From Octopus sinensis (taxonomy: Eukaryota): 64,000 nucleotides of DNA. The stretch is taken from positions 71,734,001 through 71,798,000 of the forward strand of contig NC_043004.1 of assembly GCF_006345805.1 (NCBI RefSeq). Reading direction: 5' to 3'. The notes below the pieces were generated by a model. It had not been told where the DNA came from and ran no database searches. It was given only the letters and a program-made list of their open reading frames with translations. Made by a program: the position numbers and the translations under genes. Positions 8,431-58,246 of the stretch are shown here, piece by piece. The stretch's first letter is position 1. Each line of letters begins with the position of its first letter.

Positions 8431-8828
8431 ATGATATTATTATTATAATTAATATTATTATTATTACAATTAGTATATTTGTTTTATTGCGTGTTAAAGA
8501 ATTTTGATCTCGGGAGAAACAACCCAATTTCTGTAATGAGGATGAAATACCCAAAATGTACCCCCACCATCATTTAAAAGAAACAATCAGTGATGTGTCA
8601 TACAATAAGCTATTTGTAGTTATTTTCGTTCCTCAATGCTTTGATTCCGAATCCCGCTACGATCATGCCTGATATCATTGTCCATAAAATAATACTAGTT
8701 AATTACTGATATCGACGTATCATAGTCGACTGTAACCTCCTACCAAAATATGCAACTGCCTAGACGAGAAATCATAGTTATCAGCAACGAATATCTATAA
8801 TGCAAATAAATAAAATGTTAATATATAC

Positions 8829-8980
8829 CCATCATAAAACTTGTACGTTGCTGTTACATTTCCAAACCACGGTGTCGTAAGAAGCCGAGTGGGATTGAAC
8901 CATTCCGTGCTACTTGAATTTTTTGCATTGAAAGTTAATGAGAGTATTTCAGTACTATTTTTTATCACGAAGAGTTTCAC
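8829..8980 (-). CDS. Coding exon 3 of secreted PAN-domain protein, left copy (VKLFVIKNSTEILSLTFNAKNSSSTEWFNPTRLLTTPWFGNVTATYKFYD+GG)
   Basis: Acceptor atttgcag at 8988-8981, donor GTATAT at 8828; 152 bp; starts in phase 0, matching the exon 2 end; the partner exon 57734-57885 has the same length and frame. Confidence 0.8.
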
Positions 8981-10875
8981 CTGCAAATAAAATTTCGAAT
9001 GAAATCAAATAGAAATTTGACAAGGAAGGCGAGAATGAGAGAGATTGAGAAAGGGAGGGGGCGTGACGCAGATGGAGAGAAAAGTATGGGTACAGATGGA
9101 CTGCTCATCAGAGGGCAAGTGAGAGGTGGAGAGTGACAATGAGGAAATGGAGAAAGACTGTTGTATGAGAGTAATGACAAGAGAAATATTTAGTGGAAGC
9201 CTTAAGAGAGAGAAGATTCTGGAAAAAAATATGCGTGTATTTTTGTTCAATGTATAAGAGGTGGAAATGGACAATAGATTACTGACGTTTGACTTAAATT
9301 GTGTAAATTCAAGTGTGTCTGTAGGACAGATTCTTTGTTTTTATTCTGTGAACCACGATTCACAGAATAATGATGAATGGATATGAAAATGAATTCCTGG
9401 AAATTATTGTTTTCAAACCATTCATGTTCTGATTAGCAGTGGTTTTATCCCCATTACTGTAATAAGGTGAAAACACAGTACGGAGAAGATCTGGATCCTT
9501 TCTATAATATGCATAAACCATCGATACATAGATTCATACATACTGTTGGAGGAGAAACATCATGACCATCCCCACGTGACCAAAATTGGACTGGTGTTTT
9601 TCAATGAAATAAAGAAACTGTGTGAACTGTCAACAATTGACTGTCGGCAGTCGATGGCGGGCAATCCTCAGCGTTGATCGTCAGTATTGGATTACACTAT
9701 TAGTATATTATCGTATCGACGTTTGGTGTGGTACAGAATACATTCTGGGTGAACAAATTAATTCTGCGAAAGTCCATTGTAGATAACTATATACGAATAT
9801 TTATTTGGGTAATACTATTCCTACAATCTTTCGCACACCCGAACGTCGTCATAATAATATCTGAGAAGAGATGAAGACAGTCAGAGAAAATATTTTATAA
9901 CATTCCATACGGTTCTCTACCTTCAGAATCTCAACCCTAGCGAAGTCAATTTACTGCTTCATCCTTTCGAATTTGATAAAACCATTTCCAATTACAGTTG
10001 CGTCGATTGCAGACGATAAATGAGTGTGTGCAGTACGGTAGAGAACCGTACGAAATGCCACAAATCATTTTGTCCGACGCTCTTTTGATTTTGCAAATTC
10101 ACTAGCCTTGTGTTGGAATAGTCGATTCCATCGACTCCAGTACTAGACTGGTACTCTATTTTATCAATTCTGAAAGAAGGAAAGACAAGTTTGAGCCCGA
10201 CGGTATTTGAACACAAATATTCAAAAGCAAAACTCTACAGGTCGAACGATTTGGCTTCTCATCTACTGTTGTATTTTTCCTTTTACCCTAAATATTCTCC
10301 CTGGTAGATGACAAAGGTTGGAAGATGTTCTAATCGTATAGGTTTCCCAAGATATTGTTTCTCGGGAAACAGGACCCAGTAGAAAGTTAATTTCTGATTT
10401 GTTCTAGATTTGGTTGTTATTTCCTCCAAATAAAAGGATCACGTAGCGTTTCCGTCGCAACTTGAACTTCTTTCTAAGTACTCATTTACGTCTAACATAA
10501 CAAGAATGCTTGTGAATGTATGTGTGTGTGCTCGAATATAAGGGTACGTGTCTGTGCTTGTGTGTGTATGAGTGTGTGTGTGTGTTTTGAGCGTGCTTGT
10601 CTGTGAATGTGCGTGTGCATTTAGATGATTCTCCAAGCAACTGGCATAGAAAGATATAAAAGAAAATAAGACACGTATCAAAACCGAAGCATGTTTGACA
10701 ACAGGATTTAAAAAGCAATAAAACCAAAAAAATGAAGAAACGAAATTACACACGCCATTGCAGTAACGACATGAACAACACATAAAAGTTACATCCTTCA
10801 ATACATAGCGAGCTGACTATTATGTTGACTGCTTTACGAAATGAAAATAATTTGGAAATTTTGAAAATTTATTAC

Positions 10876-10967
10876 CTTGTCGACAGGCCAATCATCCCAG
10901 AACGTATCAAGGGGATTATTTTTAAACGTTTCATTGGTCAACTCATAAATTTTCACCCTGTTTCTGT
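10876..10967 (-). CDS. Coding exon 2 of secreted PAN-domain protein, left copy ((D)RNRVKIYELTNETFKNNPLDTFWDDWPVDK)
   Basis: Acceptor ttattcatgcag, donor GTAATA at 10875; 92 bp; phase 1 in and phase 0 out, joining exon 1 (AAC G|) and exon 3 in frame. Confidence 0.8.
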
Positions 10968-11936
10968 CTGCATGAATAATGAATAATAAAATATTAAATG
11001 TAAAGGAACAGACAAGATTTTGGTGCACACTTTCATTAACGTTTTAAACAAAATATCTTATTTCCTACAGTACCGTGAAAAGTGCTGTGAAAAGTTCTGT
11101 ATTAGTTTAAAATTTATTATATTCGATACACAATTTTCCCAAGCTTCGAATTCATTTTCAATTATAGTTTCTTTTACACAAATTTCAGAGTTTGATACTA
11201 GACAGAAATAATAGAAATCTGTTATTGTTATTTATCACAAAATGAACTTTCAGTGAGAATCCCCCTGGAAGAATTTGTTCTAACATGACCATTCCTTCCA
11301 TCTGTCTTATTATTCCGATCTAGCATATCATTCGTTTCAAGATGATAGGATGTAATTTAAGGGAGATTTCTCTATTTCTAGCAGATAGAGCGACCTATGA
11401 AAGATGGTCCCTTTGAGCTGTTAGAGTTTTGACAATAAATGAGAGAGGTCATTCACATGTAAAATATCTGGTTTATTAATATTAGTTATGTAATTGATTA
11501 CGACCCTCGTGCACGAATACCATTGGGAAACGACCTTTAAGCATTCTTTGAATGAAAAGATTTGTTAGGATATCGCATATATTGAACAATTAACTTGGAT
11601 TCATTATTCTAACATTGAATAAATCTTTGGAATGAACTATTGTTTCTGTTTTCTTTTTGCTACGTTTATAAAGATTTGGTGCTGTCTCCATAACGATCAT
11701 TTAGAAAGAAACATTTTCTTCTCTTACAGTTTACGAAACAATATATCTAATATGTTCTATGCCGGCAGGCATACGAAAAGTAGATGCTTCTATATACCTA
11801 TGTATGCATGTATCTATGTATATATATATATATATATATATATATATATATATATATATATATATATATATATATATATATATATATATATATATATATA
11901 TATATATATATATATATATATATATATATATATATA

Positions 11937-55793: not shown

Positions 55794-55885
55794 AAAGAAA
55801 CAGGGTGAAAATATATGACATGACCAGATACTCGTTTAAATTAAGTACCCTTTATACATTTTGGGATGATTGGCCTGTCGACAAG
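55794..55885 (+). CDS. Exon 2 of the PAN-domain gene, right copy ((E)RNRVKIYDMTRYSFKLSTLYTFWDDWPVDK)
   Basis: Acceptor ttattcatgcag, donor GTGATA; 92 bp and open; lies downstream of the premature stop. Confidence 0.7.
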
Positions 55886-57733
55886 GTGATAATTTTTCAA
55901 AATTTCCAAATTATTTTCATTTCGTAAAGCAGTCAACTTAACAGTCATCTCGCTATGTATTGAAGAATGTAACTTTTATGTGTTGTTCATGTCGTTACTG
56001 CAATGGCGTGTGTAATTTCGTTTCTTCACTTTGTTCAGTTCGTTGCTGTTTAAATCCTGTTGGCAAACATGCTTCGGTTTTAATACGTGTCTTATTTTCT
56101 TTTATATCTTTCTATGACAATTGCTTGCATAGTGATCTAAATGCACACACACATACACAGACAGGTAGGCTCAAAACACACACACACTCATACGCACACA
56201 AGCACAGACACATACCCATATATTCGAGCATACACACACATCCACAAGCATTCTTGTTTTGTTAGACATAAATGCGTACTTAGAAAGAAGTTCAAGTTGC
56301 GAGGAAACAACCAAATCTAGAAAAAAAAACAGAAATTAACTTTCTACTGGGTTCTGTTTCCTGAGAAACAATATCTTGGAAAAACTATACGATTAGAACA
56401 TCTTCCAACCTTTGTCATCTACCAGGGAGAATATTTAGGGTAAAAGGAAAAATACAACAGTAGATGAGAGGCCAAATCGTTCGACCTGTAGAGTTTTGCT
56501 TTTGAATATTTGTGTTCAAATACCGTCGGTGTCAAACTTGTCTTTCCTTCTTTCAAAATTGATGAAATAGAGTACCAGTCTAGTACTGGAGTCGATGGAA
56601 TCGACTACCCCCACACGAGGCTAGTGAATTTGCAAAATCGAAAGAGCGTCGGACAAAATGATTTGTGGCATTTCGTACGGTTCTCTACCGTACTGCACAC
56701 ACTCGTGTATCGTCTGCAATCGACGCTACTGTAATTGGAAATGGTTTTATCAAATTCGAAAGGATGAATCAGTAAATTGACTTCGCTAGGGTTGAGATTC
56801 TAAAGCTAGAGAACCGTATGAAATGTTATAATATATTTTCTCTGACTGTCTTCATCTTTTCTCAGATATTATTATGACGACGTTCGTGTGTGCGAAAGAT
56901 TGTAGGATTAGTATTACCCAAATAAATATTCGTATATAGTTATCTACAATGAACTTTCGCAGAATTAATTTGTTCACCCAGAATGTATTCTGTACCACAC
57001 CAAACGTCGATACGATAATATACTAATAGCGTAATACAAGACTAACGATCAACGCTGAGGATTGCCCGACATCGACTGCCGACAGTCAATTGTTGACAGT
57101 TCACACAGTTTCTTTATTTCATTGAAAAACACCAAATCACTTTTGGTCACGTGGGGATGGTCATGATGCTTCTCCAACAGTATACATGAATCTATGTATC
57201 GATGGTTTATGCATATTATAGAAAGGATCCATATCTTCTCCGTACTGTGTTTCCACCTTATTACAGTAATGGGGATAAAACCACTGCTAATCAGGGATTG
57301 AAAATAATAATTTCCAGAAATATATTTTCATATCCATTCACTATTATTCTGTGAATCGTGGTTCAAAGAATAAAAACAAAGAATCTGTCCTACAGACACA
57401 CTTGAATTTACACAATTTAAGTCAAACGTTAGTAATTTATTGTCCATTTCCACCTCTTATACATTGAAGAAAAATGCACGCATATCTTTTTCCAGAATCT
57501 TCTCTCTCTTAAGGCTTCCACTAAATATTTCTCTTGTCCTTACTCTCATACAATAGTCTTTCTCCATTTCCTCATTGTCACTCTCCACCTCTCACTTGCC
57601 GTCTGATGACCAGTCCATCTGTACCCATACTTTTCTCTCCATCTGCCTCACTCCCCCTCCCTTTCTCAACCTCTCTCATTTTCGCCTTTCTTGTCAAATT
57701 TCTATTTGATTTCAATCAACATTTTATTTGCAG

Positions 57734-57885
57734 GTAAAGCTCATCTTGAGAAAAAATAATACTGAAATACTCTCATTAACTTTCAATGCAAAAAATATAA
57801 GTAACAAGAAATGGTTCAGTTCCATTCGGCTTCTTTCGACACCGTGGTTAGGAAATGTAACAGCAACCTACAAGTTGTTTGGTAG
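57734..57885 (+). CDS. Exon 3 of the PAN-domain gene, right copy (VKLILRKNNTEILSLTFNAKNISNKKWFSSIRLLSTPWLGNVTATYKLFG+AG)
   Basis: Acceptor atttgcag, donor GTATAT; 152 bp and open. Confidence 0.7.
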
Positions 57886-58246
57886 GTATATATAAACATT
57901 CTATTTATTTGCACTATAGATATTCGTTGCTGGTAACTATGAATTCTCGTCTAGGCAGTTGCAAGTTTTGGAAGAAGGTTACAGTCGACTATAATACATC
58001 GATCTCAGTAATCAACTAGTATTATTTTATGGACAATGATATCAGGCATTTTCTTTATCACATGACATTATAAATGAACAATCTGGTGTATTTATTTCAA
58101 TGCCCTACCAATGTATATAGTATGTTTCTCTGCCGTATGTGTTAAGGAGGCAAGTAATGAAAACAAGATTGACAGAAAAAGGCAAATGAAATGATGATGA
58201 TAATAGTAATAATAATAATAATAATAATAATAATAATAATAATAAT

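Follow-up and report, generated by a model that had tools for sequence, protein, structure and literature searches.

The window analysed here, a stretch of 64,000 nucleotides from the chromosome-scale scaffold C8 of Octopus sinensis, holds a large imperfect palindrome with one copy of a putative secreted-protein gene in each arm. It raises two questions: whether such a structure is genuine, and, if so, whether its arms still exchange sequence in a way that preserves the genes or are drifting apart. Taking the evidence together with the history proposed below, we consider it likely that this is a genuine, old and decaying inverted segmental duplication, the adjacency and orientation of its arms being taken from one long-read assembly.

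A repeat search and blastn self-comparison, followed by colinear chaining, placed at 71.74-71.79 Mb of the scaffold an inverted segmental duplication of ~23 kb, ~49 kb overall, which bears out the ~49 kb imperfect palindrome described in the initial annotation. The left arm (8665-32133) forms a reverse-complement colinear chain with the right arm (35434-58049), and the two adjoin on a single contig, beyond what chance would produce. The chain comprises 20 blocks (15.3 kb), and ~15.3-16.8 kb can be aligned between the arms, at a mean identity of 90.5% with gaps counted; substitutions affect 1098 of 16484 sites (6.66%). The outer boundaries are sharp, at 8665 and 58049, and no inverted homology was found past them over 17 kb leftward and 25 kb rightward. 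The spacer (32134-35433) consists mainly of dispersed repeats with (TA)n arrays at both edges, and a search of the species' own genome identified 32702-34043, 34220-34741 and 32408-32640 as multi-copy repeats, at 72-94% identity. Its length is 3.3 kb when the self-complementary (TA)n arrays (31960-32133, resolved by TRF as (TA)87, and ~35434-35640) are counted as arm, and ~4.0 kb (31886-35916) when they are left out of the arms, the latter value fitting the earlier estimate of ~3.9 kb.

The transposable elements had been read as a chronology, with those common to both arms older than the duplication and the arm-specific ones younger or deleted from one arm, and this holds in outline. A Tc1/Tc3-type transposon remnant on the minus strand of the left arm (20159-21136; HTH_Tnp_Tc3_2 at 1.5e-9 and a weak DDE_3 match) lies within aligned blocks, is common to the right arm (48792-49515) and has many ~82% copies genome-wide. 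A Helitron helicase remnant (22592-24429, minus strand; PIF1 at 2.8e-14 and 1.2e-8) has its right-arm partner at 44347-46306 on the plus strand, with the open reading frames paired. The Pfam matches to transposase and PIF1 helicase in blocks present in both arms confirm that these two elements are shared, as annotated. The same applies to the position of a putative Penelope-like element remnant (28016-30074, plus strand; partner 36865-38886, minus strand; aligned blocks of 87-90%), which does occupy both arms; its family name comes from reading the open reading frames by eye, and a Pfam search of the block gave no match. Confined to the right arm are a mariner/Mos1 transposon (46634-47454, minus strand; Transposase_1 at 1.2e-23, HTH_48 at 5.3e-9), which lies opposite a 1.85-kb gap in the left arm and had been correctly assigned to one arm, and a LINE reverse-transcriptase open reading frame of 721 codons (41175-43337, plus strand; RVT_1 at 3.5e-33, zf-RVT) that falls in gaps specific to that arm. 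The left arm alone carries a 2.7-kb insertion in intron 1 of its gene copy (11064-13729, a chain gap of 2666 nt), with very high contig depth at 13201-13782, as is typical for repeats, and an expanded (AT)n array of ~1 kb (27087-28069; TRF and chain gap). A previously proposed retrozyme was not recovered, as neither hammerhead nor any other ribozyme family matched the window at the gathering score or at E<=0.1.

Each arm contains one three-exon gene, transcribed outward and encoding a signal peptide and a PAN/apple-like domain, so that the divergently oriented pair of secreted-protein paralogs noted at the outset is real. The exons, PAN-like exon 1 and two further exons bearing the motifs WQKVFEM...LYW...PI.KV and FNGTG.NST.WF, place both copies in the octopus family typified by LOC106876621-25. 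In O. sinensis the family numbers at least 55 genomic copies, counted as open-frame paralogs, and its proteins consist of a signal peptide, a single PAN/apple-like domain and a tail of ~130 residues. The domain does not reach the Pfam gathering score (best PAN_4 ~17 bits, where 27 would be required; E=0.005, under the cut-off, on left exon 1), and sub-threshold matches were obtained in 20 of 23 family members for PAN_4 and in 14 of 23 for PAN_1. Eight cysteines are invariant or nearly so (C44, C61, C65, C71, C77, C81, C97 and C99 in left-copy numbering). In the AlphaFold2 model (pLDDT 74) the mature part has a helix at 58-67 and seven strands, a predicted arrangement that agrees with the PAN fold, in which an antiparallel sheet holds a single helix. 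Its best Foldseek matches are mainly PAN/apple-type (plasminogen, HGF N domain, FXI/prekallikrein, SML-2, MIC4/5 and LAPP), with probabilities of 0.97-1.0 and TM of about 0.5 at E values of only 0.009-0.35, and a profile search of the PDB returned apple/PAN chains only (E 0.01-0.5). Full-length O. bimaculoides relatives are named 'Apple domain-containing protein' in UniRef, and the clear full-length matches, among those whose source was looked up, were all Octopus proteins. Judging from these comparisons, the family appears to be an octopus-only group of small secreted apple-domain proteins. It resembles established PAN/apple proteins (PF00024 PAN_1 and PF14295 PAN_4, as in the plasminogen/HGF N domain, the apple domains of factor XI and prekallikrein, and apicomplexan MIC4, MIC5 and SML-2) in its predicted β-sheet with one helix and its Cys-rich core. 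Classical PAN/apple domains have 6 cysteines. Unlike them, the octopus family scores under the Pfam gathering thresholds and conserves 8 cysteines, and a single domain is followed by an octopus-specific tail of ~130 residues of unassigned fold.

All three exons were found in both arms by tblastn with O. bimaculoides family proteins, and their splice sites are canonical. In the left copy, on the minus strand, exon 1 (16889-17213) comprises the ATG, the signal peptide and the PAN/apple-like domain, in which none of the 8 family cysteines is missing, and ends at the donor G/GTGAGT; exon 2 (10876-10967; 30 codons plus 2 nt) is flanked by canonical AG and GT; and the open frame of exon 3 spans 8798-8980. 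In exon 3, stops common to both arms interrupt the segment that matches the ortholog's last ~45 residues. The right copy, on the plus strand (exon 1, 51456-51768; exon 2, 55794-55885; exon 3 open frame, 57734-57892), lacks 12 nt after codon 3 and carries a nonsense codon, TAG at codon 98 (51747-51749; TAT in the left copy). In addition, TAC at 51684-51686 encodes a Tyr in place of a Cys that is present in the other 22 of 23 aligned family members. The right-copy protein is the same in all four assembled versions of the right arm. Between the copies dN/dS amounts to 0.87, which does not differ from 1 (Fisher P=0.74), and amino-acid changes are distributed symmetrically, numbering 13 for the L and 10 for the R lineage. 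The dN/dS value together with the right-copy stop implies that the exons are not being conserved as functional units, and intact, selectively maintained genes were not found in both arms; rather, both copies seem to evolve near neutrally. Both are also absent from public protein sets. The stop and lost cysteine on the right, the dN/dS, the shared disruption of the C-terminal region and this absence from protein sets make function doubtful for both copies, the case against the left one resting on negative evidence from one presumed RNA run and protein databases. The pair probably represents a by-product of birth and death in a family with fast turnover and not two working genes.

The patchy identity reported between the arms was upheld when divergence was measured. 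Per 500 nt, substitution divergence ranges from 1.4% to 15%; counted per 200 sites, substitutions have a variance-to-mean ratio of 3.5, and the longest perfect tract, 267 nt, exceeds the maximum of 221 in 2000 permutations, which makes the heterogeneity significant. No 3-nt periodicity is seen in the substitutions between the arms. Identity reaches 97-98.6% in only two tracts, each 0.55-0.73 kb long: 22323-23049, with 1.4% divergence from 45849-46588, and 25306-25859, 97% identical to 40080-40628 and including the 267 perfect nucleotides at 25325-25591. We interpret the heterogeneity to be consistent with sporadic past gene conversion and no continuous homogenisation, the tracts of 97-100% being traces of occasional arm-to-arm events; it is the heterogeneity alone that points to conversion, with local selection or mutation-rate variation as alternatives. 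One form of the selective alternative, that purifying selection on non-coding regulatory or RNA elements kept both tracts near-identical, draws on the fact that 25300-25770, which holds the perfect match, is locus-specific: in the own-genome search it matched nothing beyond the two arms and the redundant contigs that represent them, unlike a dispersed repeat. However, 22323-23049 lies inside a dead Helitron helicase, where selection is unlikely, neither tract matches any Rfam family, and an open reading frame in 25319-25657 has no Pfam match, so that we regard this explanation as unlikely, if worth bearing in mind.

The assembly is visibly untidy at this locus. Redundant copies of it occur at C8:72.43-72.49 Mb (72.4266-72.4934 Mb) and on the unplaced contig C9593. 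The twin on C8, 675 kb away, is a 99.3% inverted copy of 29472-64000 of the window and beyond; it covers 2.6 kb of the left arm before a gap of 100 N cuts it off. C9593 is chimeric, with a U-turn: 99.7% self-complementarity extends over its outer 20 kb, the reverse complement of the left flank forms its right end, and its left arm combines left-type with right-type stretches as a mosaic, 94-97% identical to both arms. The whole palindrome is spanned cleanly only by the contig of the window; the window itself is free of any N. Over the spacer and right arm the three assembled versions differ by 72 substitutions in 22 kb, 42 of which (0.19%) set the window apart from c8b and C9593, which agree. 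At 99.3-99.6% identity and 0.19% substitutions, and with the twin ending at a gap, these copies have the character of redundant haplotigs.

Independent reads were examined as Logan short-read contigs aligned on the left arm, from runs X1, X3 and X5, which carry three organism labels. X1, the run that best covers the stretch, yielded two contigs over exon 1 (16986-17232), one L-type with 1 difference and a depth of 54.3, the other R-type with 19 differences plus the 12-nt gap relative to the left arm and a depth of 51.9; all 17 of 17 alternative letters in this stretch are the right-arm base. X3 and X5, which come from different studies and bear other organism labels, contain both types at 14789, 15012-15104 and 17942-18140, among other places, and over exon 1 X3 has R-like sequence only and X5 L-type only. 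Distinct arm sequences are therefore present at diagnostic sites in all three runs. A reading of the C9593 mosaic as a recently converted haplotype is not favoured, since an R:L depth of 3:1 would be expected and X1 shows 1:1, provided that X1 is the assembled animal; the mosaic looks like an assembly collapse.

That unlinked paralogs or divergent haplotypes were wrongly joined tail-to-tail by the assembler or scaffolder is suggested by the inverted twin with its terminal gap and by the U-turn chimera, but we judge it highly improbable. The window lacks any N, and the layout of inner arm, spacer and inner arm recurs in three contigs representing two allelic versions ~0.2% apart, whereas between the arms there are 6.7% substitutions and several kb-scale insertions of transposable elements, far over the allelic level. 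This also renders unlikely the mis-joined haplotypes that had been named as grounds for abandoning the palindrome. In X1 the two arm types have equal depth, both also turn up under other organism labels, and fold-back read chimeras give near-identical arms with no spacer, unlike those seen here.

Least probable of all, and in our view barely tenable, is an actively maintained palindrome in which ongoing arm-to-arm conversion keeps a functional secreted-protein gene pair: it could appeal to the significantly patchy divergence with tracts of 97-100% identity and to the mixed left arm of C9593, but the arms have a mean divergence of 6.7%, no exon falls within a high-identity tract, their blocks being 87-93.5% identical and dN/dS 0.87, the right-copy stop was left uncorrected by the left copy, and the C9593 mosaic is better read as a collapsed consensus, given the 1:1 depth in X1. 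The earlier statement that the arms are still exchanging sequence, like those of sex-chromosome palindromes, does not stand, with 6.7% between them and near-identical tracts few and short. The arms of primate sex-chromosome palindromes are >99.9% identical through frequent gene conversion and carry expressed genes. The octopus locus shares with the gene-bearing palindromes of the primate X and Y (e.g. human Y P1-P8) its big inverted arms, unique spacer, gene copy per arm and some signs of exchange. It differs in that the arms are ~90.5% identical, with 6.66% divergence overall where a homogenised palindrome would have ~99.9% arm identity or more, one of the gene copies is broken, coding sequence seems to evolve neutrally and nothing ties scaffold C8 to a sex chromosome.

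For the decaying duplication that we favour, the phylogeny supplies a bracket in time. L and R nest within the family tree as sisters (100/95) with LOC106876625 as outgroup (100/98). Since this is the single ortholog of the pair in O. bimaculoides, the duplication is, on this tree, younger than the split from that species. It is older than the separation of the three organism labels in whose reads both arm types occur. One complete family member would have been copied head-to-head, along with ~14 kb of TE-rich upstream DNA, possibly by a replication error of fold-back or template-switch type; the outer boundary lies ~300 nt beyond the point where the last coding exon that can be recognised begins. 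Thereafter the arms evidently accrued 6.7% substitutions, the right arm received the mariner and LINE insertions, the left arm gained its 2.7-kb insertion and AT array, and the right copy acquired its nonsense codon and lost a conserved, presumably structural cysteine.

Two further young inverted pairs of family members occur in the genome, at 17.362/17.400 Mb on C27 and on contig C9771. The suggestion that inverted duplication could expand a secreted-protein family is supported by these pairs, as one route of its expansion. Counting L/R with those on C27 and C9771, at least three inverted pairs of similar age are present. A bolder joint proposal, that inverted segmental duplication is a recurrent and perhaps dominant mode of expansion of the family and that conversion selectively preserves the ~470-nt non-coding element at 25300-25770 and not the genes, is speculative and rather doubtful. 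The locus is best regarded as an ordinary example of octopus gene-family growth and shrinkage.

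An inverted-repeat scan and a blastn self-comparison recovered one colinear reverse-complement chain with outer ends at 8665/58049 and inner ends at ~32130/35434, and the ~49 kb imperfect palindrome proposed in the initial annotation is thereby borne out. The chain comprises 20 blocks (15.3 kb, mean identity 90.5%); when the blocks that it skips are added, the aligned length of the left arm (8665-32133) rises to 16.8 kb, and it differs from the right arm (35434-58049) by substitution at 1098 of 16484 ungapped sites (6.66%). Because the innermost arm matches are (TA)n arrays, which are self-complementary, the spacer measures 3.3 kb (32134-35433) or, if these arrays are not counted as arm, ~4.0 kb; at least 2.1 kb of it is dispersed repeat. 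Outside the palindrome, inverted homology is absent over 17 kb beyond 8665 and 25 kb beyond 58049, where only short pieces of transposable elements (TEs) were matched. Repeated C2H2-zinc-finger-like ORFs lie at both inner arm ends (31588-31914, minus strand, and 35908-36509, plus strand) with a DNA identity of only ~82-85%; those of the right arm form two or three tandem units. Pfam zf-C2H2 stays below threshold for these ORFs, which may derive from TEs and predate the rest of the arms.

The assembly holds further copies of this locus. Window positions 29472-64000, together with 72 kb or more of the sequence that follows, recur in inverted orientation at C8:72426600-72493370 (loci L001-L006) with 99.3% identity. 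This twin lies 675 kb from the window locus on the same scaffold (C8) and contains the spacer, right arm and right flank; it terminates at a 100-N gap at 72493371, and own-genome searches followed the block for at least 72 kb past the window end, with its limit before C8:71.94 Mb. The whole palindrome is present again on C9593, an unplaced contig of 79 kb (loci L009-L016). A three-way alignment of the spacer and right arm (22 kb; window, twin and C9593) revealed only 72 substitutions, at 42 of which (0.19%) the twin and C9593 share a base that differs from that of the window. Since this is an allelic level of difference, the redundant copies are haplotigs and not further paralogs, and the sequence comparison points to the twin being an unpurged haplotig placed by scaffolding rather than a third paralog. 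The possibility that the two arms are themselves the two haplotypes is incompatible with the right arm having two alleles of its own.

C9593 requires separate consideration, as its left arm combines L-type and R-type sequence in a mosaic, 94-97% identical to each arm, which could be read as a recent conversion. The contig makes a U-turn, with its outer 20 kb (1-20269 vs. 72332-52074) 99.7% self-complementary and its right end repeating the left flank of the window in reverse complement. Furthermore, a real mosaic haplotype in the animal behind X1, the short-read contig set that best covers this stretch and that may, though not certainly, derive from the assembled animal, would be expected to give R-type (right-arm) and L-type (left-arm) sequence at 3:1 over exon 1 of the gene described below, whereas the contig depths are 51.9 and 54.3, respectively, i.e. 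1:1. On these grounds we reject the conversion and regard C9593 as probably the result of collapse or chimeric joining during assembly. A search of the literature on haplotigs in the O. sinensis assembly found nothing relevant.

When ATG-initiated ORFs were screened for a hydrophobic N-terminus, one at 51456 (plus strand) and its mirror at 17213 (minus strand) stood out; in each, the start resembles a signal peptide and precedes a Cys-rich domain that matches PAN weakly. In a six-frame genome search, at least 55 open-frame relatives were found at 25-47% identity, clustered on C8 (71.55-72.43 and 74.1-74.6 Mb), C27 (17.0-17.43 Mb), C4 (11.0-11.5 Mb) and unplaced contigs. Alignment of 23 distinct family sequences revealed 8 conserved cysteines; PAN_4 matched 20 of the 23 below threshold, and a PDB profile search returned apple/PAN chains only. 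The AlphaFold2 model, limited to exon 1, reached a pLDDT of 74, and its top Foldseek matches were mostly PAN/apple-type domains with weak E-values. A profile search against 1.84 billion representative sequences matched 92 proteins; throughout the analysis, exons were queried separately rather than as a spliced CDS. The best full-length relatives, from Octopus bimaculoides and O. sinensis (116-249 aa), are named 'uncharacterized' at NCBI and 'Apple domain-containing protein' at UniRef, and their ~130 extra residues reveal the conserved '...NSM*/NSE*' ORF ends to be splice donors. A Pfam scan of the longest non-TE ORFs of the window gave nothing useful, no segment reached P<0.01 when 3-nt periodicity of arm-to-arm substitutions was used as an exon test, and the literature on octopus apple-domain proteins yielded nothing relevant.

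Young pairs also occur elsewhere in this family. Two are inverted, at C27 17.400/17.362 Mb (L040/L041) and on the unplaced contig C9771 (L033/L028), with DNA identities of 88-90% and 91-95%, respectively, over 3.3-kb loci; the latter could be another assembly fold-back. A direct young pair lies at C27:17.255 and 17.276 Mb (L037/L030; 91-93%).

Exons 2 and 3 were located in each arm by tblastn, and all splice sites are canonical. The left copy occupies 16889-17213, 10876-10967 and 8798-8980 on the minus strand and the right copy 51456-51768, 55794-55885 and 57734-57892 on the plus strand; both therefore point outward, in agreement with the divergent orientation noted from the sequence. In the region for the last ~45 residues, frame-by-frame reading found stops at identical places in both arms, indicating that this disrupted state predates the duplication, and the arm boundary falls just past it. 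The last ~50 residues of LOC106876625, the single O. bimaculoides ortholog of the pair, gave chance-level tblastn matches in both flanks and no genome-wide match.

The right copy is clearly damaged: a Tyr codon of the left copy and the family is TAG here, Tyr replaces the Cys present in 22 of 23 aligned members, and 12 nt are deleted after codon 3. The right arm occurs four times in the assembly, and the protein is identical in every version. The left copy retains open frames and intact splice sites and displays no sign of constraint. Across the three exons, compared exon by exon, dN/dS is 0.87 (dS 0.139, dN 0.121; Fisher P=0.74 vs. neutrality), exon 1 CDS divergence (8.8%) equals that of the non-coding surroundings, and amino-acid changes polarised by the O. 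bimaculoides ortholog number 13 in the left lineage and 10 in the right. Word-based protein searches found nothing for right exon 1 and matched the O. bimaculoides ortholog only to itself; public protein sets thus lack both window copies at 53-410 aa. In X13, a presumed RNA run and the only one examined, contigs fell on repeats only and none on the gene, which is no evidence of silence. We put the chance that both copies are non-functional at about even; a functional left copy beside a right pseudogene is a serious but somewhat less probable alternative, and function of both copies is improbable.

A maximum-likelihood tree built from exon-1 proteins recovered the two copies as sisters (100/95) with LOC106876625 as outgroup (100/98), which places the duplication after the split from O. 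bimaculoides; the same tree groups the O. sinensis neighbour gene at 71.686 Mb with LOC106876624. Runs from three studies, carrying three organism labels (A, B and C), contain both L-type and R-type contigs, with 0-2 differences from the window per 200-360 nt; the duplication therefore predates the divergence of those organisms. Over exon 1 (16693-17274), summed contig depth falls to about half in the contig sets X3 and X5: the sole type present is R-like, in a contig bearing private changes, in X3 (organism B) and L-type in X5 (organism C). Such a pattern could mean that one copy was lost or converted in a particular lineage, or just that contigs are missing.

Pfam identified remnants of a Tc1/Tc3 transposase and a Helitron PIF1 helicase in both arms, within aligned blocks; a PLE-like block, its ORFs read by eye only, is likewise shared. 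A mariner/Mos1 element and a LINE reverse-transcriptase ORF of 721 codons (also by Pfam) are found in the right arm only, at left-arm gaps, while insertions of 2.7 kb (11064-13729) and 1.4 kb (18802-20158) and a 1 kb (AT)n array are confined to the left arm. The 'retrozyme' suggested earlier is unsupported, as Rfam gave no match in the window to hammerhead or any other ribozyme family and, at E<=0.1, only miRNA look-alikes driven by microsatellites. LINE-rich flanks adjoin the palindrome on both sides (1-8664; 58050-61700), with RVT_1 ORFs on the right (58191-59093, 60351-60914) and, by eye only, reverse-transcriptase-like ORFs on the left (1-5750). The LINE of the right flank shares 97% identity with the one specific to the right arm (41815-42773), and the family has therefore been active recently. 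The right flank also carries an (ATT)n microsatellite of ~195 units (62406-62989).

Divergence between the arms is overdispersed (variance-to-mean ratio 3.5), and perfect matches extend up to 267 nt, compared with at most 221 in 2000 permutations. One tract of 1.4% divergence (22323-23049) lies within the dead Helitron. Another high-identity tract (25306-25859) was locus-unique in an own-genome search over 25300-25770; this non-repeat segment (mirror 40169-40610), which contains the 267-nt match, is 98-99% identical between arms and has no Pfam or Rfam match. Of the claim that the arms are still exchanging sequence, the patchy divergence stands, and it is most simply read as sporadic gene conversion, above all in the Helitron tract; this is not continuous homogenisation, and the stop codon of the right copy has gone unrepaired.

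Cumulatively, the locus is an ordinary inverted segmental duplication, likely caused by a fold-back or template-switch replication error. It lies within a lineage-restricted gene cluster that is expanding in tandem, and decay followed the event. The proposed analogy with sex-chromosome palindromes extends to geometry only. No new mechanism is revealed, and the chief practical value lies in gene-family annotation and in an assembly warning: with redundant and chimeric copies of the locus in this part of the O. sinensis reference, mapping depth would come out halved or distorted and counts of family genes too high. With its exon coordinates and the identity of the broken copy supplied, the pair represents one concrete birth-and-death step in a rapidly evolving, lineage-restricted family of octopus secreted proteins.
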